64,000 bases of DNA from Octopus sinensis. Lineage: Eukaryota. Below the pieces are notes generated by a model. The model made no database searches. It was given only the letters and a program-made list of their open reading frames with translations, and was not told the origin of the DNA. Numbering within the stretch: the first letter of the stretch is position 1; every line of letters starts with the position of its first letter. Of this stretch, positions 25,476 to 45,200 are shown one piece after another. The stretch covers positions 126,790,001 through 126,854,000 of the forward strand of contig NC_043000.1 in the NCBI RefSeq assembly GCF_006345805.1, written 5' to 3'. The translations under genes were made by a program, and so were the position numbers.

Positions 25476-28400
25476 TGTATATATATTTATAATTTATGCT
25501 CACATACAAACATGTAGAAAATGAAATACATATATGTATGCATGTATATATATGTGTGTGAGTGTGAGTGTTTATGTATATATGTATATATTTGAAGCTT
25601 CAATGTACACAAATACAAATACGTACACATGTACATGTATAGATATTCAAGCGAAGCAGCAACTTTTTAACACAGCTACAGTGTGTTGTGTTTTTCATCA
25701 CATTACAACAATTATATTAAATATCCAAATTTAAATAAAGTTCCAGTGTTTACTTTTAAATCATTTTATACTCTGAAATAGCTTTCAGTTTATTTTTTTA
25801 ACTTTAAGGCAGGCTGGATTGAATGACTGCACAAATTTACATAGTCGCATAACTTATTGCAGAGAAATGTATTTTATTTAACTGCTTATTTATATTTTTT
25901 AAAATCAATGTCTGTCATTTAAAGTATGACATAGCAAAGATTTCAGTTTCTCAGCTTGCTTAATTAAGAGGAAGACAGTAATATGTTGTATCAAAGAGCA
26001 TAAGGCATTGCTCTTTCAAGACTTAACTGGTGACATATATGCTTATATATCAGCTGTTTAACTACTCAATAGTTAGATATAGAGCATACTTATATAAATT
26101 TAGTAAATACCCAGTTAAATTTTCAGACAACATACAAGACTGCTATTTCATCTTCTATTCTTCTTAACTATTCAAATGTTGAAAGTCTCTTACCTTCAGT
26201 TTTTTGCAGATTTGGCCATGCTCTGTAATGCAAACGTGTTTATTATTGACTGAGTCCAACCATATTTCAGAATTCTCCAACCAAGCGAGTAAGTTCTTCA
26301 AATCAATTTTGAACTGTGACCAATCCTTGCGGTTGCTCTGTAGTTTGCTGTCTTTTTCAATAATATGAGCTTTAAGTCTATTCCAGCGGTCAGATACATC
26401 TGCAATGAAAACAGAAACCCTCTCAGAGTACTCAAATATAATATATGTATGTATGCATGTATATATATATATATATATATATAATGAAGAATTTGGACAA
26501 ATAAGTATAAGTTGATTAGTGTGCTTAAATATGGAGTAGACCACTGGCACAGTTTAGGCTACCTGTTATCATCTGCAGTTGTGTTACACTTCTGTTGGAT
26601 CTACATCAGGAACTCCACAGTTAGGGTAATATTATTAATTAATAGTAGGAGATAGATTTCATATTAGACCTTTATTGGGTACAATATATGTTTCGACCCA
26701 TCAGTTGGGGTCTCTTCAGGTACACTGATACAAGTTAGGGAATGAAGGGTATATAACAACAAGCCAGCTGACACTAAAAATCTGTAGTGAGACATCTTTA
26801 TCAATGTACCTGAAGAAACCCAGACTGATATGTTGAAACATACGTTGTACCCAATTAAGATCTAATATGAAATCCATATTCTATTAAGTAATACTATATA
26901 TATATATATACTTTTAATCTTTTATTTTTCAGTCATTTGACTGTGGCCATACTGGAACATCACATTTGGCTGAACAAATCAATCCCAGAACTTATTCTTT
27001 GTAAGCCTAGTAATTATTCTATCGGTCTCTTTTGCCAAACTGATAAGTTACGGGGTTGTAAACACCTTAGCATCAGTTGTCAAGTGATGATGGGGGGACA
27101 AGATGCAGGGTAGGTTTTCAATAAGAACAAACATACAGACACACACACATTTATTGTTGGCTGTCAGAAAAAGGGGCACTCAATAACATTTTTTTTTTTG
27201 CTTGTTTCAGTCATTTGACTGTGGCCATGCAGTGATTAAAAAATGCCCAATCACACTCCTTTTTGACTCCAATCTTTTCAAACACACACACACACACACA
27301 CACATAGACTCTGAAAAGCCGAAAGACAAAGTCGACCATGGCAGGAATTGAACTCAGAAAGCAGAGGTATTTTATCCAATGCCAAATGACTCTGCCAATT
27401 TCCAGAGTGTCTGTGTATAAAATGTAGAACTTAAATAAATGTAATTCACAATGAATATTTGCAGCACAGCAGCAAAGTTGTAGAAGCTGAAAATTTGAAG
27501 TCTTTTATTTATTTATTTTTTTATTTATTTCCATGAAGGTAATCAATCTTGCTGCTTGTCCTGCAATATCAAATCTGTTATTAAAAGTTTTCAGACATAT
27601 CATGTCACATATTAGGTGATGTCAGACATAGGTGTCCTTTGTATTGCAGCGTAGACATCGGAAGTAGTTTTAGATGTATAGAAATGTTCAAATACTAATG
27701 GTTTCTATGAATTCTTTTAATCTTGTTTGTTGTTTGAACATGGAAATGGAGAAGAAAAAATATAATAATTATACTTACTGGAGACCTCCTGATCGACTGC
27801 ATTAATCGATGTGAGGCCAGGCCTAGCCTTAATCTGGCTATAAACTTCTGACACATTATCCACACTATCTTGACAGTCAGACATTATCTTAATCTGAAGA
27901 AAAACACATCAAGAAAAATATATTAATACATACATATAAACATCTATCATACTTACTGTCTTAAGATAAACAGCAATAAATATAGAAATTACAAACCTAT
28001 GAATTGTCATGTGATTTTTATTGATATGAATTGACCAAAAGAATACTACTATATAAGCAATACTTGCCTATAATGACCATACATTAAAGATTTCTTAAGA
28101 GGCAAGCAAAAAAAAATGTAGTTTCACCATTTTATATAATTTCTTTAATCAAAATTCCTTAAGAGAATATCATAAGAAAAAATTCCAAATTTTTATACCC
28201 CTATTCTCTTTGGTTGTAATCCTTTTTAAACTGATTTTGACTGCCATCCCTTTATGCCAACTGAATTTAAGACTTTAGCCATACCTTTAAAAAAATTGGT
28301 ATATTTGTTTTAAAAAGGAAAAAAGAAAACTTTGTGTAAAATGAATTTACTTACGTAGTCTCTTGTCTCCTGATCCAGCTCTGGGCCAACTGGAGTTTGA

Positions 28401-31400
28401 CATCTCAATTGCTCTTCTCCAATAACCATCTTTTGTGCACAGTTTTCCAGAGCAGAAAGCATTTCTTCAAGAGAAGCTTCCATTTCAGCATTCTGATTTA
28501 CCTCAGGTAGTTCATTACGTATTTTGTTTCGGTGATCATCTCTTGAAAAATATAATCCTAGAAAACAGAAAAGATTCATAATGAAAGACTGTATGTATGT
28601 TATTCAGTTTTATTTCAAGATTTCTTGGCAATAGAGAAAGAGCCAGTTTCTAACATAGATCCAAGGCTCCTTCACTGGAATTTCAACAACATCAACAGGG
28701 TATTTGTGCATGTGTGTGTGTGTGTGTGTGTGTATGTAATAAGAGAAATTTATTTTCAGCAAAGACAAGTTATACTATCTGATATGGCTTGGTCACATAT
28801 GGTTATATTGGATGTTATATTTTGGAGATCCTACTCCCTAATAGAAAATGAAGACCATGCAACTACATTGATGTTATTGGCCAAGACTCACTGCATGTAA
28901 CTGAGGAACTACCAAAGCTAATGGGGGGAACAGAGGTCTCTAGTGCAGTGTGGTGAAATGCATCTTGCTCAAAGGCACTTGAGATGTATCACGAAGAATT
29001 ACAAGTATCTCAACTGATACATCACATGTTCCAATTCAGACATTTGCACTGATCTGCACTATGACCTTAAGCAAGTTATTTTATAATCTTTCCTTCAATA
29101 TATTGGTAAAATATTTCCCAGTCCTATCTTACATGTAAAATAATAGGTCCTCTGGCATATTTTGTAACCATGGACACCTGAATGAAGCTTATGCATGAAT
29201 CTCAAATTTCTTACTCACTTCACTATGGGAAGATTGTGAACTTGAAAGAAGTAAAAAGAAGCGTGTAAAAATAATGTATGATGAAAATATAGATTTTTGT
29301 GAAAGACATGCAAATTATTTGTAATTTAATTTAATCCTAAGAACATCTAATTGAGGAAACATAGACACCAACAAAACTTATTAAAAAGATAATGCAGACA
29401 ATATTAGGTTATAAAATAAGAGAATGAAAGATAAAACTGTGTACCTGATGGTGTTTTAAATGAATTTTTGTATTATTATATTATATTGATGTATAATTTT
29501 ATCACAACACATCGACAGCATCGTTTTATTGGGTGTATAATGAAGATGATAGCAGTGGTGATGGTGGTGGTAGTGATATAATGATAATCATGCTCCTGAT
29601 GCATACAACAAGGATGATAATGATGACGACGACGATGTCAATGATGACATTGAGGTTGGTGATGGTGTCACCAATGACAAAAATATTAACGACACTGCTG
29701 CTGACAATGACAATGTTGATGATGATGTTCATGATGATGGTGATGATGATAGTGATGATGATGATATAAGTTCATGTATGAAGGAACGGAAAAAAAAATA
29801 ACACAAGGAAACAATCAATATCTATAAAGAAATTAAAAATGAAAGATTTGATTTATGATATATTCACTAAACACTTTAATTCTTAGTTTTGTTGGCTGAT
29901 TGTTCTTTTGATATTTCTTCTTCTTCTTTCTTTTCTTTTCTTTCTTCTTTTTTTATTTTGGAACATTTCAAATGGAAACTAATCTAAACATTGTTGTAAA
30001 CACAGAAGTTGAACAAAAATGACGGAAGCTGACTGCTGTCAAGCTACCATCTCGTTAATATATCTTCTGCCAGTTGACTGAGAAACATATAAAAGGATCG
30101 TGAATTATTATTACGTTGCTATGATATTGATGATGATGATGATGATGATAATAATGATAATCATGATTATCATCATCATCATCATCATCGTTGTCGTCAT
30201 CATCAGCATCAATATCATGGCAACAAAACACCAAAACTCTAGACTGAAAAGATTATTGGGTAAAAATAAGTTAATTTTGTTTTCAAATTTTAAAACAATA
30301 ATAGAAAAAAATATTTTAAAGTTGTGCTTGACTTGTTAAAGCAATTTTACATTTTTTTTATTTTCATAAGAATTGTTATCTTTAGGACATTAAAAGATTT
30401 TTGTGAATGGAATTTCTTAATGAAAACTGTAAAGAAGCCTGTTACACTCATACACATATACATACATATAAATATACACTGCATCAGCTGTATGGTATAT
30501 ATTTCTTCAATATGTAATATCAAGCACAATATTTTTCTTCATTTTTAACATTTATTTAGATTTCAATTGCTGAAGAAAATGTAATGAGAAGTCCAATATT
30601 AAAACATGTATGATGGTTATTTGAATAACCTTTAGCACTGGTCCTCACAGAAGCAAAGTGGCTGAGTTCCTTTCAAGTCTAGGGCCTCACAGAGGCAATG
30701 AACTTGTAAACTAATTTTAATGGTCATTTTAGAACTCTCTTAGATTATTTTGATTTTGTATTTGGTTAACAATATTCTTTATGTGAACTTATGTATTGAA
30801 GCATATTTTGTTGTATCTTGGGAAGGTCATTATGTGAATAACAAACACATGTACTGGTTCTATTTTACTTTTTATTTGTCAATTGGTTAATTACCAAAAC
30901 AATTAACTAAACAACTGATTAATCATTCAGTCAATCAATGACTCAGTTAAGTTTCTCAAAGTCCTTTCATCGCCATTCATGATCTCTTCAATGACATGCC
31001 TTCTCTACTCCAGGACTGTCAGTCTGTTTCCCCTTAGATTCTTTTTCATAAGATTTACATACTATTCACCACAATTTCAATAGCATCAAAATCCAACTGC
31101 TAAAAGAAGAAGTACTACAAGATGTTTACAATGGCAATAAAATTCTGTGTTAGATTGTTAAAGTTTTTGAGACATCCTACTGAAAATAATTCCATTTAAA
31201 ACACCTTTGCATTATTCATCAACGCTTTCATATAATGTGAGGTTGCCAAGAATCTCCTCTTTCATAAAACACCTGTGCTTGTTGCTCTATTTTACTTTAG
31301 TCTCTCAACACCTGGTTTAAAATCACTTCCCTCAAACTAAATACTACTCCACCAACTTAGGCAGGGGGTGGGGCTTTTTCCTTTTCTTTACTCATCTTGC

Positions 31401-33135
31401 AAGTTACCTGTAGCCCTCACTAGTGCTGGCAGTATGAAAACAATTACACTGAGCACACTATAAATTGGTTAGCATTAGAAAAGGCATCCATCATGTAGTT
31501 ACACTAGTCAATCCATTTCTTATAGGCCCTATTTTACTTCATGCCCCATATCTTAAGCAAAACAAAAATTGTTATTTCATTGTAATTTCAAAACAGCTTA
31601 AATTTCTCACATTCTTCATGAAAAAAAGAAAAGTTCATCTTAGTGAATTTAAAAATGGTTAATGGTGATAGAGAATAAGAAACTTTTATGAATAATTACC
31701 AGAAGTAAATTGATCAGGTGGCCTTTGAACAAAGCTGCTTTCTTGCACTGGACTGTCTTGGATACCTTGGTAAGAATCAAAAAAAGAAAAATTTGTTAAT
31801 GTTGTGTCTACTGAAACAATCTTTCATCAGAATATATTATCATTAAAACTTTTTACAAATTTAAATAAGAGACAAACAGATAAGGGTTGGCAACAGGGAA
31901 TGCATTTGATCTTAAAATGTTGCCTCAAATTGAATCTATGCCAATATAGAAAAATGGATATCACTTGCATATTTAAAAAAGGATCAGAACAATATTTCTT
32001 GTGTGGTAAGACTGAAAAACTGGTAATAGTTTTTTTTTAAAGATATTCTTATGCAGGTTATTTTTATAAATGTTATATTTCTTTCCACTGTCTTATTTTT
32101 TGGGTTTCATGATATAAAATTTCCACCAAGAAAAAGTAATACAAGGAAAGGGAAAAATAAACCCCAGAAAACTAGACAGAAGCAGTATTGCAACAATCTG
32201 CTAGAAATAGTAACCAAACCTCCCTCATATCACATTTACTATTTTAAAAACATAAGGATACATTGCATAAAGTATATCTAGACACACTATGTCTGAAATA
32301 AAAGATGAGATTGTCTTAAATTATTATGAGAAGGCAAGTTGCATATAGTTACATCAATCAATCTATTTCTCATTATCCCTATTTTCCCTCATACCCATAT
32401 CCTAGGCAAGACAAAAATTGCTACAAAAGCTTTTTTCTTCATTGTAATTTCAAAAGAAATTTCTCACATTCTTCATGAGAGAAACAAAAGTTCATCTTAG
32501 TGAATTTATAAAGTGTTAATTGTGATGGAGAAGAAGACACTTTTATAAATAATTACCAGAAGAAAATCGATCAGGTGGCCTTTGAATAAACCTGCTTTCT
32601 AGCACTGGACTGTCTCGGGTATCTTGGTAAAATTCAATAAAAGAAAATTTATTAATGTTGTGTCTAATGAAACAATTCTTCATCAGAATATATTTATCAT
32701 TATATTATCAAAAGTTTTTACAAATTTAAAAAAAAGGAAGAAATAAACAGGTAAGGGTTGACAACAGGAAGGACATCTAACCTTAAAATGCTGCCTCAAG
32801 CTGGATCCATGTCAATATAGAAAAATGGACATAAATTGTGTATCAAAAAGGATCATAACAGTATTTCTATAATACTGAAAAACTGATTAGTTTTTTTTAT
32901 CTTTTTAATTTTCTTACTCTTTTACTTGTTTCAGTCATTTGACTGTGGTCATGCTGGAGCATTGCCTTTAGTCGAGCAAATCGACCCCAGGACTTATTCT
33001 TTGTAAGCCTAGTACTTATTCTATCGGTCTCTTTTGCTGAACCGCTAAGTTACGAGGATGTAAACACACCAGCATCGGTTGTCAAGCGATGTTGGGAGGA
33101 CAATCACAGACACACAAACGTATACACACACACAC

Positions 33136-33193
<58 letters not shown>

Positions 33194-36072
33194 TATGATG
33201 GGCTTCTTTCAGTTTCCGTCTACCAAATCCACTCACAAGGCTTTGGTCGGCCCGAGGCTATAATAGAAGACACTTGCCCAAGGTGCCACGCAGTGGGATT
33301 GAACCTGGAACCATGTGGCTGGTAAGCAAGCTACTTACCACACAGCCACTCCTACGCCTATATTATTTAGATCATTTTCATAAACAGTATATTCTCTTTC
33401 ACTGTCTTATTCTGAGGTTTTCATGATGTAAAATTTCCACTAAGAAAGAGTAAATAAAGTAAAAAAAGAGTAATAAACCTCACAAAACTAAATTGGAACA
33501 ATATCGCTACATCCAAGTTCAATAACATCATAGTTTAGCCACAAACAAAAAGAGTTACTACAAGATGTACTACAATAAAATTCTGTGTCTGAATATTAAA
33601 GCTGTTGAGACATCCTGTCAAAATGATTCTATTTTAAATAACTTTGCATCATTCATCAACCTACCCTCACAATCCACATTGTATTCTAGAATTGCAATGA
33701 CATGACATAAAGTGTAATAAAAAATTATACGAAAGAGCTACATTCCTATTTATGGATTGTTCTAAATATAGATGTATAAATGTTCTATTCAATATTGTTG
33801 AATGAAAAGGTCTAACCATAAAAATTAGCAGGATGCAATGATTAAATAAATGGCAAATAAACCTGTTAGAAATAGTAACTAAATCTCCCTCATATCCCAT
33901 ATGCAGTCTTGAAAAGGTTACGGTACACTAAATAATGTAGTTCTTGATATATTATGTCTGAAATTTGAGAGAGGATGGTCATGTTTGGAATATCTTTGAT
34001 CATGCCTCTGAATCAGGATTACTCTGGCCTAAACAACAGCAGCAACAGTGCAGGCGCAATGGTCCAGTGGTTAGAGCAGTGGACTCGCAGTCATAAGAAC
34101 ATGGTTTCAATTCCCAGACCAGGCATTGTGAGGGTTTATTGAGCAAAAACACCTAAGCTCCACGAGGCTCTGGCAGGGAGGGGTGGTGAACCCCGCTGTA
34201 CTCTTTCAGCACAACTTTCTCTCATTCTTTCTTCATACTTCCAATCTAGTCTTGGGATGTCCTTGAACTATTAGGAACTGGCAAGTTGCATATATTCCTT
34301 CCATCCAGATATACCCATCACACACTTATCTTATTCCCCTATTCTACCTTACACCCATATCCTAGGTAAACAAAAAAAAGTTTACAAAATGATTTGCCTT
34401 CTTTCTAATTCCAAAGTGTTTCTTAATTTTCCTTTGTAATTTTCTGACAATTTTTTCTTTCAAATTTCAAAACAAATTTTTTTCTAAATTTATGCAACCT
34501 CTGATAACAAAAAGAAAAAGGGATTGATGGGAAATACAGAAGCTGTTGAAGATAATGGAGAAGATGGTAAGTTTGTAAATAATTACCAATTCGTTCTAGG
34601 GTAACCTTGTGTTCTGGTTGTGGTCTTTCAAGCACCAAATGTCGATAATCTTGGTCATATGGAGAAGTGTGAGGTTGATCAACCTAGTAAAAGAGAAAAA
34701 TAGTAAGATCTAAAATCCAAAGAAAGTGGCAGTGATCTATACTGGCAAAAGTTAATCAATTAAAGTGCACTGATTGAAAAAAAAATTACAATGATTGATT
34801 AGCAGTGATGAACAAAAAATTCCCTTTTTTAGAAACTTGCTCTTCTAGGAGAGAAGAATTATATACAAACCAATATAGAGACCAATGAAGCACTTGTTAA
34901 GAATCAGCAGCTCTCTTAGCTTCCCTCTCTGTTTTTGTTCAGAAGAAGGACAAGTGTCTGAAAAGTTGAATTTTTCACACCTCATGGCAAATCAGTCATT
35001 GGATATTTTCTTCTTTTTTAATCAATGAACATTTATGGCAACGGAGGAAATTTAGTTACGTTTTAAAGAAATGTACTCAATAGTACTCTTTTGTAGGAAA
35101 TTCCAATAATGGATGACAGAATCAATTTCTAGGAACTAAATGCCTTATGATATCTAGTTACATTATTTTAGGTTTTGATTTCAAATCAGGCCAAGGTTGT
35201 TTTCTTTATTTTTATCATTCCAGGATCAGTAAACACTTAGTTGATTCAATCAATTTTGTGCCCCAACCTACTTCATCATCATCAGGACATTACTATGACA
35301 AGTCCTAGGACTCATAGGACTACTTACTCAGTTTCTATGATGTATAAATGACTGAGATCACAACATCACCCCTGGACAGGATGCCAGTCTGTTGCAGAGT
35401 TAATCATTTACTGTTGAATGGACAGGTGCAATGTGAAATGAAGTTGTTTTGCTCACGTATACAATGCACTTCATGATCGTAAGATTGTGGTTTCGATTCC
35501 TGGACCGGGCGATGCATTGTGTTCTTGAGCAAAACACTTCATTTCACGTTGCTCCAATCCACTCAGCTGGTAAAAATGAGTAACGCTGCGATGAACTGGC
35601 ATCCCATCCAGCTGGGGAACACATACACCATAGAAACCGGGCCCATGAGTCTGCCTAGGCTTTAAAAAGGGCGCATTTATTTATTATACAATGCACTGCC
35701 TGGTCCAGGAATCAAAACAATGATCATATAGTCATGAGTGAAACACCCTAACCACTAGGCTAGGTGCTGTCACTACCCTGAATTTCCAACTGTGACAATG
35801 TATTTGAGTTCATGTGGAAATATGATGAGATGGTCAGCAACACTTTGCAATATCTTTTATCTTTTACTTGTTTCAGCGATTTGACTGTGGCCATGCTGGG
35901 GCACTGCCTTGAAGCATTTTTAGTTGAATTTTAAGCCTAGTGCTTATTCTATTGAACTCTCTTGCTGAACCGCTAAATTAGAGGCATGTAAACACATCAA
36001 CACCATTTGTCAAGCAGTGGGGGAGGGGACAAAAGTATATGCATATATATATACATACATATATATATATAC

Positions 36073-36119
<47 letters not shown>

Positions 36120-36133
36120 CACACACATATATA

Positions 36134-36217
<84 letters not shown>

Positions 36218-39200
36218 CATACATACATACATACACATACATACATACAAACATATATATGTATATATATCATCATCATTATAATTGTTTAACGTCTGTT
36301 TTCCATACTGGCGAGGCTTTGATCAGCCTGAGGCTATGGTAAAAGACACTTGCCTAAGGTGGCAGACAGTGGCACTGAACCCAGAACCATGTGGTCAGGA
36401 CGCAAACTTCTTACCACACAGCCAAGCCATTTAAGAGTGGTTTACACTCTAATGGTGATTCAAAACTGAACTGCTAGGTAGTTGGTCAGACATTATCATC
36501 AAACCACAGTAGTTTTACATGAGTGATATATCAGGCAACCAATCAGCATCAAGCCATCACATGATTCAATTGTCTAGAATCTTCTCCTTGTGCCCCATAA
36601 AAAGGTAGTTTTTGTCAGTAATTGTAAAATTTTGAAGCATCTGCACATTGAGTCTCCATTCTTGCCACATCCAGCCAGTTAAGATAGGTGGTCAATAAGA
36701 GACAAGAATTTTCATAACCAGGAAAATATAGTGCAATTATTTTCCGGTTATGACCGCTGTATCGGTAAGCGTGTTGTAAACTCCAAGCAGTATGTCTCTC
36801 CCAGTATGTAATTACTGCGAAAGACCAACACAGTTAAAACTCTATGTGCAATAAAATCTTCTGTTAATTCTAATGACTTGTAGGTACATGATATTTTGTT
36901 ATGTGACCATAATCTCTATATATATAAAAGTCAGGTTGTGTGTGTGTGCATGCGTAAACTCACATAACTTCTGAAGTTCATAACTGATTTTCTCCAAACT
37001 GGAAACATACATTACCTGTGTTCCAGAGATCGTTTTAGACTCTTAAAACTCTTCACATAAAGAGTAACAGGCCCTCTGGGAGCAGAAAATACCCTTTCCT
37101 GAGTTATGTGGAGAAGGGAGATAACTCTTTGTGAAGTAACTTTCAGAAGTTGATTGTCTCCTTTACATCCAGCCCCACTAATCTGCTGAACGTTTTACAT
37201 CTTTTTAAAATATTGATATTAATTAATGTTTTTAATGACATTTAATTATTAACATAACAGTGTCATCTCAGTTCATTGTATGTATTTCTTAAAATTTGCT
37301 AAGCTATTGATATTATTTGCTTTTTTTTTTACTGACACATCATAATTAATGTACAATTGTCATCTTCCAATGAACACATCCACCAAATAAACACTTGACA
37401 TGTCAGTTAGTTGAATTAGCCCATCATTTACTCCACAAATGTTTTGTTGTCAATGCTACACTTCTCTGTATCACATGTTTCAACATAACTGTAATATATA
37501 TACAGGCTATGTGATTGGAGTGCTGAGCATCTCTGCTAGTATACTATAAAGTATATCAAATGTTTGATATACTTTATAGTATATTATGGTTGCAGAACGA
37601 AATACCATATACCTACAAGTCATTAGTACTTATATACCAGTTCCAAGAATACGTTTACAGTAATCCCTTGACTATTGCGAGTGTTACATTCCAAAACACC
37701 TGCAATAGTCTTTTACTCTTTTACTTGTTTCAGTCTTTTACTCGTTTACTTGTTTCAGTGATTTGACTATGGCCATGCTGGAGCACCGCCTTTAGTTGAG
37801 CAAGTATATTGTGTTATTATTATTTTCTTATAAAGTGGCTTCTATTGCTTAACTTGAATTTAACCTATGTATGTCCTAACAGAATCAAAACGTAACAGAA
37901 ACTTTATTTGATGCAATATTTTAAAGACGGACTGTTTTATAGAAAAGTTATAATTACTATATCCTTTCCAGCATTCATTTTCTCACACATTGCGTGCAGT
38001 CGTTCCATAATAAAATCATGATAGCTCTGGAAGTCATCAACTTCCTTCTGTAAATGAGTTTTACCGCTGACCTCCTCAACCATTTCTAGCAGTTGATCAG
38101 TTATATCTCCAAACCGCTGGAATTTGTTGTTTTTCATGTTCTCTTCATGTCTAATTTCCTAGAAGTAATGATATTATTTGATAAGTATTTTGTAATTGAG
38201 GTAACAAGCAAAAAACAAAACAAAAAGAAAACAGCAATGAAAACTAAAGAACTAATACGAGATAGTCACCATATTAACAACACTAGTGTTGTAGTTACAC
38301 TAATTTCTCCCACTTCCATTAATATCTTACACTATCTTGCAGTATTCACTGACTCAGATTCATTCACCTGAGGCAATTGCAGATAACTGAGACGAAAATC
38401 AGTTTAATATCATATTAGCAGGAATCCATTAGCTTCTAAATTACTCAATTGATTAAAAAGTTATTTTCAGCTAAGAAGCACAAGTGCAGCTAGCTGGAAG
38501 ATGCATACAAGCATATGCAGACTGACTTTGCATGTCACTTTTGATAAATGCCACATGAGTAATAAATTAAATGTGACAATCAATTTGTACTAAAGATAGC
38601 AGCTCCCATCAGTCAGGCAATGGAGCAACAGTTCTGTACAGGAAATCTAATTCACAGATATTACATACACATACACACGCCATGCATGCAAACATAATGC
38701 ATATACAACTCACTCATACATACATGCATGCAATCACAAACACACATAACCAACTGTACGCTATTAAATGCCAGTTCTTTGTCAGTAAATACCAGTTCTT
38801 TGCGGATTAAACACTTGAACTTTCACAAACCTGTTATGTGTTTAATCACCTAAAACCTTGTCAAGTTGAAAACTGATGTTTGAATGACATAAAGTGTGGG
38901 AAGTGTGTGTGAGGGTGGAATTTAATTATGCCTGTATTTAAATGCTAGGATGGAAGATGTAAAAGAAATTTGACCCTATAACACCATTTTATTATTTTTT
39001 TTTTTGTATTGTAGGATGAGATTAAAAATGAATTGAAAAAACATAAATAAAATTAAATAATAATTCTTTGAACTGAAATTGAAAATGATTATGTTCAAAA
39101 TGATTTCTTAAGAAAAAAAAATGTTAGAGATGAATATGTATGAAAGCCTTGGGCAGGTCAATACTTGAAAGCTTTGCACACTAATTGAAGTACAAAAGAT

Positions 39201-42200
39201 GTTGGCAGCAAATAGAACATAAATAAATAAAATATGTGAAATGGAAAGAATAATTTTTCTCAAGATTAAAAGTAAAACACAAATGATGACCAGGTTAATG
39301 AACGTGATGTCCAGAGTAATAACTTAGAATTGTAAGTTTTTAATATTTTGAAGAGGTATGAATAATTGAAGAGTTAAAGTATTAACTTCTAGCTGAAATG
39401 TATTTTCAAGTAAAATAAAGCATTTTACTCTTTGAGTCTCAGTTCATTTAGTTGTGGGAACTTCAAACAAGATCTGGGAACATCCACAGGCTTCATGTTT
39501 AATGCGAAATGCCTAAGGGTAAAAAGGTTTCCAATGAAAATCCAATTTTCTAAAACCTCTTGTATTTATGTAACCACTAAAAGATATTTTCTAGCACTCA
39601 TTGTGATAGCAGAGATTTGAACTTTGTGTAAAATGTACAAAATAAAATGCTTTCTTGAAAACAGGTAAGAGTTAGCAACATGAAGAGTATCCAGCTGCAA
39701 AACAGTGTCTCAATAATATACTCATCTAACCTATGCTAACATGAATAAAACAGACATAAAAGTGAACAATATATACATATGCATGTTACACATACACTGT
39801 ATCTAAATATTTAAAAGAATTAAAAATTTCATTAACATCTTATTTCAAACTATGCTTATGGAGCCACACTTCACTTCTGTTAACAATGACACAATAATAT
39901 TTTTCATTTTCTGTCAATATATTTCTGAATTGCTTTGTCTGTGAATAGCATCAAAATGAAATTATAACAAATTAAAAACTGGAAAACCTTTTAAAAAGAA
40001 AAAAATATTTAGAAAATATGGGAAAATTCTACTTAAAAAATATTGGATTTGCAAGAGCAAGTCAATACAAACTGCTGAGAAAAGATGATTGCTAACGGAA
40101 GTATTTTTTTAAAGCAAAATTATATTGATCTTAAAACTGACTCAAAGTGCTCTTCATCCTAATAATTTTGTGATATGTTATTCATTTCAAAGAAACCTCT
40201 CTGAAATTTACTGTCATATACATACATACATACATATGTGCACATACACACAACACACACATTTCTAAAACATGAATGTGAATCAAGGATAATATTATGT
40301 TATAGTAGTTTGTCTTTCTTCCATTGTTAGCTGTAGTTTCTATTCAGTCTTTCTACCTCCTGTTATCATTTTCATTTCTTTACTTATTGCAGTCATTTTT
40401 TTTACTTATTGCAGTCATTGGACTGAAAATGCTTTGCATTAATGCCAGTGCCTGGACCATAACAGCGATCAGTTTGAAAACAGGCATTCATAAAAAGTAA
40501 TTGAATTTTATCAGTAGATTCGATTACATTTTGAAAACGAACTGTATTTTAATAAATACTGACTTTATAATTGTTCAATGCATATATATTTTGGGGAACA
40601 TACTGTAAGTGTATTTAGATTCTTATTCATTGTTTAATGTCACATATATAAGACATTTTTGCAGCTCACTTGAACATAGTCTATTTATTACGTTCACGTT
40701 GTATATCCAGTGCATCTTTCTCTGTAAATACTTGATCTTTAGACCTAACATATCATCATCATCATCATCATCGTTTAACGTCTGCTTTCCATGCTAGCAT
40801 GGGTTGGACGATTTTGACTGAGGGCTGGCGAACCAGATGGCTGCATCAGGCTCCAATCTTGATCTGGCAGGGTTTCTACAGCTGGATGCCCTTCCTAATG
40901 CCAACCACTCCGAGAGTGTAGTGAGTGCTTTTTATGTACCACCAGCACGGGGGGCCAGTCAGGCGGTACTGGCAATGACCTCTCTTGTATCTTTTTTTAC
41001 ACGTGCCACCGGCACAGGTGCCAGTGAAGTGACGTTGGTAATGATATACCATATTATCACATTTTTATAGACCGAGACAGAAAAAAGAAGCCTGCATACA
41101 AATGGAAAATAAACCCACTTGCTTGCAAGTGAATCTTCACTTCTATTTAAATTTCAAACTATCTGCCAACAAAGTCTGTAATAGTCCTCATTACAACCAT
41201 AAAATTTAGTTTAAACATAAAGATCAAAACAGTAATAACTTGATACATAAACATGTACGTTATAGAATTAAACATTCATTATTGCTCTTAATACAGATGT
41301 AAACTCTCCACCCAGGTTCATGTGCACTTGTAATTCACCTCTGGTACTAAAATGTTTCTGCACAACCAAATTTTCCACAAACCACATCCTACTGACTAAA
41401 ACAAAGGAATATTGACTAGCTAGTCTTGAAACACTGAAAGAGAAAAAAAAATGACTGCTAGTCGTGAATGGAACCCCTTTGATCTTATTTCTGCTCATTC
41501 ATGGCTAACTTGTGTCTAAGCAGCAGCAACAACAACAATATTGAAAGAGAAATCCTTTTGTCTAAGAATGCTAATCATCACAATTTTAAAATATCACCTA
41601 GGTAACAGCTTATCTGCTGCTTTAAGAAATCATCACAGCAATCCATATTAAATGACTTTACAATTGAACTATAGCAGCAAACACCTGGTTTTTATAAAAT
41701 ATGGTTATTGAGATGAGATTAGAATGTCTGCGATTGATAACAAAATAGAAAATTTATAGAAAATAACTTACAGAAAGGCACTTAATATTGTTAGCGACAT
41801 CTTCAGATTTTTCAACTTGGATTAATTTTGCATCAACATCTTTCAGCCACTTCATTAGTTCATCATATAAGAAATGGTATTCATCCCACTTCCCTGCAGA
41901 TGTTTTCATATTACCCATATCACACAGCACTCGTTTAGATAAGTTGTCCCATCTCTCATTACATTCCCATGTTTTGTTTTTTATGTCGTTGTTGCTGTCC
42001 ACATAACCTTCCTTCACGAGAAATTTGTATTGCTTATTAATAGCTTCAAGGTCGACATGGTGTTTATTAATATCTTGTTGAATGCTCTGAAGAATATACA
42101 AAAGAAAAACAAAAAGATTGAATTGGAACAATTCTTCTTTTATTCTTTTACTTGTTTCAGTCATTTGACTGCAACCATGCTGGAGTACTGAAAAATTTTT

Positions 42201-45200
42201 TTTAGAATTAAGTACAGTAGTCTGAAAATAAAGTAGTGTTAAGCATATTAAATTGGTTGCTGTTTATCTTAAACTTTCATTCAACTATTAGGTAGCTATG
42301 CTGAGTCTGTCTAAGAATTACAAAAGGGTACACATGCCTGTGGAATACTCAACCACTTATATTTTAATTTACTGAGCAGGAAAGTTAGTTGATTGAACAA
42401 CTAAATCCTCATCACTGAAACTGATAGAGATTCACCCATTGTATATCCGTTATATAGCCAACTTGATGAATTAAACAATACTTGGTTACTGAGACATTTA
42501 ATGGAAGAATATAGGGGTGTTTTCCAATGCCTGTCTTCTGTACTTTAAAGGTTTAAAGCTTAAACAAGGATCAAATTTTAATGTGTGAACCACTGAATTC
42601 CTCACCAATAATCTACTTCCTTTTAATAAATGAAAACATTTTCTAGGTATGGTAAGAAATTCTGAAGAAAAAGTTCAGTGTAAAGCATGGATTGAAGACA
42701 AAAACTTATTCAATATGTAGCGGACTCTCTCTGTTATATATATATACATGAATACACAACTTTGTATGAACATAAGCTAAATTAAATGTATCTAACATGC
42801 AGTGATTCAAAGTTAATTTGCTTTATTTTTATACTGAAAAATAAAAACTGACAGTTTAAAGATGAAATCACATAGAGGAGATAATGGTCTGATAAAGAAA
42901 CAACATAAATCATATTTAATGTATGTTTTATATTTGTCTGTGGTGGTGGTCGTGGTGGTGTCATAAATGTTTAGACTGTATCAATACTAAGTAATTCACA
43001 ATCATAAAACATCTAAATTGCCATAGGAGTTGTTGAACAAAAAAAAAAATGATAAGAAAAAGATGAACCAAACTAAGTTTAAAAATAATTTTTAAAAGAT
43101 TTTGGTTTGATATAAAACATATATAAAAGACAGAAAGGAAAAGCTTAATATAAACAGCTTTACATATAATCCTGATCAACATATAATTCTTACAAGGTGT
43201 GGGTGTCAGGAAGAAATCAAAAACTAATCTTTACATACCTCAATTTCTTCATATATACTTTCTTTCTCTGATAACTGGGAGTCGCTATATTCTGCAAGAT
43301 CATTTTCAATACTTCCAAGCCAGTTTGAGAAACTATTGTAATCTCGGAGAAATATCTTCCAAAGTCTCCATGTTTCTTCAATGCTAAAATGAAATAACAA
43401 ACAAGAATATGTGAAAGAAAGCAAGAGCTGACTAGAAGAGACAAAAATTATATGAGAAAATAAAAATAAAAAAATAAGGTAATACAATGCATTTTTATCA
43501 AATAACAAAAATTTAGATATTTTTCAACTATTTTCTTCATTTCCTTTACACAAAAATAAAAACATTGACTTATATTTTATGCTTATGCTAAAAGAGTTCT
43601 TGAACAAATGAATTATCTGGAGGTTTTTCTTTTATTAATTCTTTCTATTAACATATTCACTCAATTTCTCATCAACTATACCTATAGCTTACATATTAAC
43701 TGTAGCTGTGACAATCACCAAACATTCTACACTAATAGGCAAAGAATATTAGGATGATTCTTGTACTTACATTTCATACTATCTGTATAGAGATATTCTG
43801 TTTAATCTTTACAGAATTAAAGCAAGCTAATCCAATACATTAATTCAGATAGTGAAAATAAAAGAAAGCCATTTGTCTGACAACTAAACACACCCTCACT
43901 AAGTAACATGCTTTAACCATTACCTCACAGACAGACCATCTCCTCTTTGTACTTCTATCATTACTGCAACAACCTCTATTAGTCTAACTATCCTAGCTAC
44001 CTTCTCACTCCATTTAGGCCAGCCACGTAACTCATTTCTCTTTCTCCTCTTGTCATTCTTATAGCTTCCTCCCCATATCACAGATTTTGCACTAAACATT
44101 TTTCCTAGCTCTTCCTTCCCAGAATTCCAACCTTCTGGAATCCTCTTCTTGTCCACATTTTCGTTTTTCTTGAAAATATTGGCTAGGTGGTGTTCAAATT
44201 GAATATCAATGGCATTTGGTCTCATGGCAGTGTGAGTGTAACCTGTAATTGTCACAGACAATATTTCAGTCTCACTGGAGTGTGAGTCTGATCTAAAGAT
44301 ATCAAAAACACTACTGTTCTTCCTCTAATGAATTTAGAAAACAAATGAAAGGTGAACTCACCATGCATGTCTTTCAGGTAATAAAAGACAGATAGTTTTC
44401 CATCGCTTGTCAAGAGTATTCTTGGCTTCGTTGAGAGCATTGTATTCGGCTTCAGTTCGGCAGGCATCCGTATCATGTAGAAGAACTTCACAAAGATTAT
44501 GTACCGAAGCAATACCATTGCTGTAACGTTCAGTCTCTCTCTGCAAGCCCTGTGTTCAAAAGGAAAAAATAAAATGATACAGAAATTAACAAACTACATT
44601 TCTGGTCTTTCACTCTGTAATATTAGACCAGTGGTTCTCAACCGGGGTCCATATGGCCCTTGTTGGTCTGCATTTGATTCCATTACTAAAATTTATGTGC
44701 AACAAATTGGTTATACTTCAATACACAAAATATTTTCATAATTCTTTTTTATACAATTTCTAATAATATCTAATTATAAAAATTTAATAGGATTTCTTAA
44801 ACATCGAATGGTTATGAGGGTCCACCTGAGTAAAATAGGAATCAAAAGGGTCCATAGATAAAAAATAGTTGAGAATCACTGTATTATAAGAATGTGCAGA
44901 TGCCAGTGGAATACTCAACCAGTTATATGTTAATTTACTGAGCAGGAAATTTAGTTGATTGAACAACTAAATCCTCATCACTGAAACTGATAGAAATTCA
45001 ACCATTGTATATCCATTATATAGCCAACTTGATGAATTAAACAATACTTGGTTACTGAGACATTTAATGGAAGAATATAGGGGTGTTTTCCAATGCCTGT
45101 TTTCTGTACTTTAAAGGTCTGAGAGTTGGACATGTTTGTTTGCTTTAGAGTATAGAACCAGGATATTTTCAATACAGCTCAGAAAACAAAATCTCAAAAG

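Follow-up and report, generated by a model that had tools for sequence, protein, structure and literature searches.

A locus-specific tandem duplication in an octopus nesprin gene contains two candidate linker exons that appear to be partial copies of a neighboring exon

We have analyzed a 64,000-nucleotide (nt) stretch of the Octopus sinensis genome (contig NC_043000.1, positions 126790001 to 126854000, referred to here as the window, with positions counted from its first letter unless contig coordinates are given) and describe an array of small duplicated exon candidates within a nesprin gene. The host genome is large and AT rich (2.72 Gb in 13,516 contigs, with 33.5% G+C). The window carries a multi-exon gene on its minus strand. 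One of its exons, in the open reading frame (ORF) at 41754-42263, matches the Spectrin_SYNE1 family (PF25034) with 35.8 bits against a cut-off of 35, and two further exons match the family more weakly; in a profile-free search, the best long matches of the same exon were the C-terminal ~700 residues of KASH proteins of 5900 to 7000 amino acids. Furthermore, a KASH exon (PF10541, 90.8 bits; contig coordinates 126779324-126779497, minus strand) lies on the same strand and downstream in the gene, 10.5 kb outside the low-coordinate edge of the window, and it is the sole KASH match in the genome at an E value of ≤0.01. Based on the Spectrin_SYNE1 match, the matches to the C-terminal part of KASH proteins, and the same-strand KASH exon, it is concluded that the gene encodes a nesprin, in agreement with the initial annotation of this sequence.

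The array lies between two exons that fix its place in the protein. Upstream in the gene is exon F (37958-38158, minus strand; 201 nt, phase 0 to 0), the constitutive neighbor, which encodes the end of a spectrin repeat; its ORF begins exactly at the acceptor cttctag/GAA, and its donor is GATATA/gtaatt. Downstream is exon J (28355-28557, minus strand), which starts in phase 1 and encodes the conserved nesprin TPxGPELD segment. The phmmer matches of exon J are nesprins (P0011, P0110, and P0003), aligned at the equivalent C-terminal position, and an alignment with nesprin-1-type sequences agrees. Because exon F closes a spectrin repeat and exon J carries TPxGPELD, exons G, H, and I fall in the unstructured linker, where they had been placed before.

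All three members of the array are on the minus strand. The founder, exon G (34587-34683; 97 nt, phase 0 to 1), has the acceptor ttttactag/GTT and the donor ATTG/gtaattattta. Exon candidate H (32557-32622; 66 nt, phase 1 to 1) reads ttttaccaag/ATACCC...TTCTG/gtaattattta and has (D) as its first residue; exon candidate I (31700-31765; 66 nt, phase 1 to 1) reads cttaccaag/GTATCC...TTCTG/gtaattattca, has (G) as its first residue, and is the more derived copy. On the reverse complement, these coordinates and phases, and the phase-1 start of exon J, are as first annotated. Likewise, the translations of H and I fit the motif proposed for them, (D/G)xxDSPVxESxFxQRPPDxFxS, with DSPV..ES.F.QRPPD.F.S as their common peptide core, and any pattern of inclusion is frame neutral, since no stop codon interrupts the translation of G-J, G-H-J, G-I-J, or G-H-I-J.

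The tandem duplication is real, far beyond chance, and specific to this locus within a 2.7-Gb genome. H and I share a gapless core of 194 nt that is 88% identical at a spacing of 857 nt, and the BLAST self-match of the repeat covers 574 columns at 79% identity (E=1e-141). A whole-genome search with the repeat core returned exactly two copies (E=1.2e-94 and 2.3e-63), and a six-frame search of the genome with the G-H-I-J peptide matched G, H, I, and J alone; no fourth exon-bearing unit and no copies elsewhere were found by this peptide search of the genome or by nhmmer. Since the genome is rich in repeats and two real elements resembling short interspersed nuclear elements (SINEs) lie within the region, it might be argued that the repeat is an assembly artifact caused by haplotypes that were collapsed or duplicated, or else a transposable element of the dispersed type. 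However, the copies are 12 to 21% apart and differ by many indels, far above allelic divergence, which rules out a haplotype artifact, and the 194-nt core and the peptides occur at this locus only in the 2.7 Gb; we regard an artifactual or transposable origin as extremely improbable.

Comparison of the copies with exon G suggests where they came from. In an nhmmer search, the alignment of H with exon G started 11 nt before the H acceptor and covered G from position 34660 through its donor (window-wide E=1.1e-3), and MAFFT gave the same G-H register: the last 63 nt of G are homologous to H and I, in equal reading phase. The CAAG of the H and I acceptors corresponds in this alignment to the coding sequence CAA/GAT (Gln-Asp) of G, and the first codon of H, GAT (Asp; the G of the preceding exon plus AT), is the GAT of G. 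The former coding stretch CCTCACACTTCTCCATATG has turned T rich ahead of the H and I acceptors. At two aligned codons, G and H have CGA in common and I has CAA, which is consistent with CpG decay in I. The homology continues past the donor, as had been noted: the donor-side intron of G (34262-34586) matches those of H (32315-32556) and I (31470-31699), with 56 nt at 71% identity and with 156 BLAST columns at 68.6% identity (32315-32454 versus 34262-34415), and with nhmmer E values of 8e-6 and 1e-8. The tail of G is therefore a third unit, related to H and I, as the initial annotation had it, and the homology among the three reaches beyond the donor-side intron into exon G itself. On these alignments, H and I appear to be partial copies of exon G, corresponding to the last 63 of its 97 nt, with an inherited donor (GTAATTATT) and a new acceptor.

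We propose that this array arose by segmental tandem duplication within one nesprin intron, in which most of exon G, its donor, and ~1.2 kb of the downstream intron were copied. At least two events would be required, an older one that gave rise to G and the ancestor of H and I and a younger one that gave rise to H and I themselves. Each copy would have retained the G donor GTAATTATT and the ancestral phase, and each would have gained a weak new acceptor from the pyrimidine-rich coding stretch of G together with CAAG. The outcome is two 66-nt units, each phase 1 to phase 1, whose inclusion or omission leaves the reading frame intact.

In gene orientation, the period of the array consists of an exon, its donor-side intron, distal blocks, and the flank that precedes the following exon. 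Unit 1 extends from 34660, inside exon G, to 32623, the flank of H; unit 2 runs from 32622 (H) to 31766, the flank of I; and unit 3 begins at I and is truncated past its distal block at 31072-31223. The units had been described as ~0.9 kb in length, which holds for the I unit (~0.85 kb) but not for the H unit (1.95 kb). Unit 1 is longer because two SINE-like insertions lie within it and because ~350 nt have been lost from unit 2 (the I unit); the ancestral unit was ~1.2 kb. The first of the SINE-like repeats (~34030-34260) has at least 5779 first-look candidates genome-wide, with copies that are 89 to 91% identical, and is not present in the I unit. The second (32899-33362) contains an (AT)26 microsatellite, has at least 3787 first-look candidates genome-wide, with copies that are 92 to 96% identical, and breaks unit 1 just upstream of H. 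Neither repeat matched tRNA or Rfam, and both entered unit 1 after the duplication.

The remaining blocks, all on the minus strand, follow the same order. The distal intron blocks of unit 1 (33363-33964) are homologous to the distal blocks of unit 2 at 32049-32299 (75% identity), where ~350 nt of unit 1 are missing, and to the block at 31072-31223 (77%). The upstream flank of H (32623-32898), with its pyrimidine tract and AAG acceptor (ttttcttttattgaattttaccaag/AT), is homologous to the upstream flank of I (31766-32040), which likewise has a pyrimidine tract and an AAG acceptor (tttttctttttttgattcttaccaag/GT). The array ends with the remnant distal block of unit 3 (31072-31223), which is 77% identical to 33514-33660 (nhmmer E=3e-13).

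The splice sites of H and I were scored with small position weight matrices derived from the exon-intron boundaries of 10 clear exons in the window. Both donors scored 9.8 bits, and only 12 of the 3772 GTs on the strand scored higher; this donor score is partly circular, since F and G, which also have GTAATT, were in the training set. Upstream of each acceptor lies a pyrimidine tract, together with ~44 nt that are free of AG. Furthermore, when the scores of H and I are taken as thresholds, no other symmetric AG..GT pair of 45 to 150 nt in the window is open in phase 1. We infer that at least one copy, H being likelier than I, could be an optional cassette exon with low or variable inclusion, a reading that we prefer tentatively and would place only just short of probable. 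The derivation of the copies from G in one phase, the four open splice patterns, and the alternatively spliced 69-nt cassette that vertebrate nesprins have in this linker (PMC3981789; PMC6775114) also favor it. An included copy would add a 22-residue module, rich in Ser, Pro, Arg, and Gln and probably disordered, between the last pre-linker spectrin repeat and the TPxGPELD segment.

Several observations, in the splice sites, in database searches, and in the divergence of the two copies, weigh against this reading. The acceptors of all 10 clear exons are YAG, whereas those of H and I are AAG; they scored -3.7 and 0.1 bits, respectively, compared with -2.2 to 8.8 bits for real sites in a leave-one-out analysis, and they rank only 874th and 402nd of the 3537 AGs on the strand. 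A strong inherited donor combined with a weak new acceptor is typical of either a low-inclusion cassette or a pseudo-exon. A collection of 5.8 billion protein clusters, which includes genomic ORFs of a related octopod (P0001; SRR11869391, 1.56-kb contig) but none from the G-J interval, contained no match to the spliced F-G-H-I-J peptide or to the H and I ORFs, and a query that combined the G ORF and five intronic ORFs of the units in one alignment likewise found no match there. A scan of JGI metagenomes with exon J found nothing. A literature search found no paper on a cephalopod or octopus nesprin.

The divergence between the copies is the third of these. Of the 66 positions, 8 are different in H and I (87.9% identity); identity in the ±100 nt of flanking intron is 88.9% (Fisher P=0.82), and conservation is therefore no higher in the exon than next to it. 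All eight differences are nonsynonymous, over 14.7 synonymous and 51.3 nonsynonymous sites; the probability of such an outcome is 0.13 at an omega of 1, 0.027 at 0.5, and 2e-4 at 0.15. The last value is a yardstick taken from the 315-nt spectrin exon at 42 kb (pS=0.31, pN=0.046), which was compared with that of a related octopod (Logan contig L003 of SRR11869391, 1558 nt, versus window positions 40396-42160; exon plus intron, 88.4% and 85.6% identical). Introns of the two octopods are 86 to 88% identical, and this divergence of 12 to 14% is about equal to that between H and I. When the changes were polarized by G, those in I outnumbered those in H by 5:1 in the exon and by 23:13 in the donor-side intron; exon and intron show the same bias, which therefore points to no exon-specific constraint. 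In addition, a rough estimate of the probability that dinucleotides, frame, and length would survive 12% divergence under neutrality is 0.1 to 0.3, and the candidates were selected for their intact look.

The initial annotation had pointed to exon cores without indels in indel-rich flanks and had taken this pattern to mean that both copies are maintained. The pattern is literally present, but it is uninformative: the gapless run is 190 columns long and takes in 25 nt of the upstream flank and 99 nt of the downstream flank, and with 10 gap events in 533 columns of flank, the probability of finding no indel in 66 nt is 0.29. Taken with the similar identities of exon and flank and the wholly nonsynonymous differences, the indel pattern does not bear out maintenance. 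The exons with their ±100 nt (88 to 89% identity) are more alike than the distal unit (75 to 80%), which would fit equally a splicing-related constraint or a tract of gene conversion between the two copies at their spacing of 857 nt. As judged from these comparisons, the H/I pair looks to have drifted essentially neutrally so far, unlike two selected modules.

It is a serious possibility, although we would hold it somewhat doubtful, that H and I are silent pseudo-exons, dead partial copies of G that the spliceosome ignores and whose intact look is what is left after only ~12% divergence. Divergence was neutral-like in every test, the weak AAG acceptors are unlike those of all real exons of the window, the gapless stretch is not limited to the exon, and two SINE insertions and the ~350-nt deletion indicate that the units are otherwise decaying freely; moreover, in the protein collection, with the coverage described above, neither a called ORF nor a fragment of a transcript matched H or I. 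However, the donors equal real ones in quality, each acceptor has its pyrimidine tract and AG-free zone, the frame is open in the required phase in both copies, and the ancestor of H and I kept the phase of G despite several indels.

The version given in the initial annotation went further, with both copies as selected, regulated modules, used either combinatorially, to give four linker variants, or in a mutually exclusive manner. The equal length and phase of the copies, their DSPV..ES.F.QRPPD.F.S core, and an identity that is higher near the exons than in the distal unit are in keeping with it, and a regulated cassette is known at the analogous site of vertebrate nesprins (PMC3981789). Nevertheless, the exon is not better conserved than its flanks, and eight amino-acid-changing differences out of eight would hardly be expected under selection (P=2e-4 at an omega of 0.15 and 0.027 at 0.5). 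Because the H-I intron measures 791 nt, H and I are both GT-AG, and joint inclusion as G-H-I-J stays in frame, the simple mechanisms that could enforce mutually exclusive use, namely, steric interference, incompatible spliceosome types (U2/U12), and nonsense-mediated decay, do not apply. In a crude test with full-length duplexfold, docking/selector duplex energies gave z scores of -0.4 to -2.2 relative to shuffles, and microsatellites make up the longest inverted repeats of the region. Nothing supports exclusivity of H and I, while RNA pairing may still be a means to it, and we consider selected and regulated use of both copies to be decidedly unlikely.

A further acceptor deserves mention beside those scored above. 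A consensus YAG site, TCCAG/TG, occurs in both copies 18 nt inside the exon (32599-32604 in H and 31742-31747 in I, minus strand). Use of this site could define a 48-nt variant exon in the same frame, beginning (V)LESRF... or (V)QESSF....

Tandem exon duplication is reportedly a source of alternative exons, an idea associated with Kondrashov and Koonin in 2001 and with Letunic, Copley, and Bork in 2002. The octopus array shares with such cases adjacent copies, co-duplicated intron flanks, equal length and phase, intact dinucleotides, and a position in the intron beside the parent exon; the similarity is locus specific and includes the flanks, and each copy has an AG and a GT in compatible phase. 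Unlike those cases, the octopus copies are partial (63 of the 97 nt of G), their acceptor comes from former coding sequence, and their divergence is neutral-like. The resemblance to exonization through a cryptic 3' splice site is that the H and I acceptor was coding sequence in the parent exon (...CCTCACACTTCTCCATATGACCAAG/AT...) and became T rich in the copies; the difference is that the donor was inherited from the parent exon and is neither de novo nor derived from a transposable element. Mutually exclusive clusters of the type of Dscam exons 4, 6, and 9 likewise consist of tandem paralogous exons of identical length and phase, but H and I are only two copies, separated by a long intron, with the same types of splice sites, in-frame joint inclusion, and no significant selector/docking pairing in the crude test described above. 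The process is a known one, of which the octopus nesprin locus is an ordinary case, and its duplication history is given here more precisely than in the initial annotation.

The closest known analogue, by position and size only and not by membership, is DV23 (Delta-SR) of vertebrate nesprin-1 and nesprin-2, a 69-nt, alternatively spliced, and highly conserved cassette in the same linker (PMC3981789; PMC6775114). It belongs to the same protein family, lies in the unstructured stretch downstream of the last pre-linker spectrin repeat and upstream of TPxGPELD, is close in length to H and I (69 versus 66 nt), and is frame neutral, and its inclusion varies among vertebrate tissues (PMC3981789; PMC6775114). 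The position upstream of TPxGPELD, as described for DV23 (PMC6775114), is shared when octopus exons F to J are aligned to nesprin-1-type sequences. However, DV23 is a single-copy, highly conserved exon, whereas H and I form a duplicated pair specific to their lineage, and exon J starts ~20 residues upstream of the expected vertebrate DV23 boundary in the phmmer register. Homology of H and I to DV23 was rejected: a seven-sequence DV23 profile did no better on H, I, and the G tail than on shuffles, and H scored -1.9 bits, a value equaled or exceeded by 764 of 2000 shuffles.

By analogy with DV23, it can be imagined that a cephalopod nesprin, through the partial duplication of a constitutive exon of the linker, independently evolved a two-copy optional cassette where vertebrates carry theirs, a case of convergent tuning, by alternative splicing, of the tether between nucleus and cytoskeleton caught at an early, near-neutral stage of exon birth. 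We consider this unlikely; if true, it would provide up to four linker lengths in a segment that in vertebrates lies beside the kinesin-binding region. More generally, if H or I is spliced in, the array would represent a clean, datable case of exon birth, in which the parent exon supplies the donor and the phase and its coding sequence supplies the acceptor, and the length of the octopus nesprin linker would be variable at a place that a regulated cassette also occupies in vertebrates. Should neither copy ever be spliced in, the array is a plain intronic segmental duplication, and it then carries a caution: intact dinucleotides, an open frame, and the absence of indels in a young 66-nt duplicate are not evidence of selection.

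Other peptide motifs of the linker were considered as well. The linkers of vertebrate nesprins, and of several from invertebrates, have a conserved W-acidic LEWD motif. Octopus exons F, G, H, I, and J (28355-38158) encode neither LEWD nor any other W-acidic kinesin-light-chain motif, and a motif of the LEWD type may either be absent from the octopus or be encoded in an unrecognized small exon. MAFFT had set RDSPV..LE of H under RDTPAS..LEWD, from which the idea of a kinesin-binding STAR/LEWD homology arose; this candidate was rejected, since the STAR profile scored -4.1 bits on the G-H-I peptide and 833 of 2000 shuffles scored as high or higher. Among 128 retrieved proteins, phmmer found no peptide resembling G, H, or I in other nesprins below an E value of 0.5. 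The head of exon G bears an apparent resemblance, a likeness with no statistics behind it, to VDQSATLPPDSPPYTRH of the invertebrate-type nesprin P0016. Finally, (GAT)n/(ATC)n-type microsatellites occur as an inverted pair in the intron between I and J (29600-29765 and 30115-30224), with one near-perfect hairpin that has 53-nt arms, 81% complementary, and a 4-nt loop.

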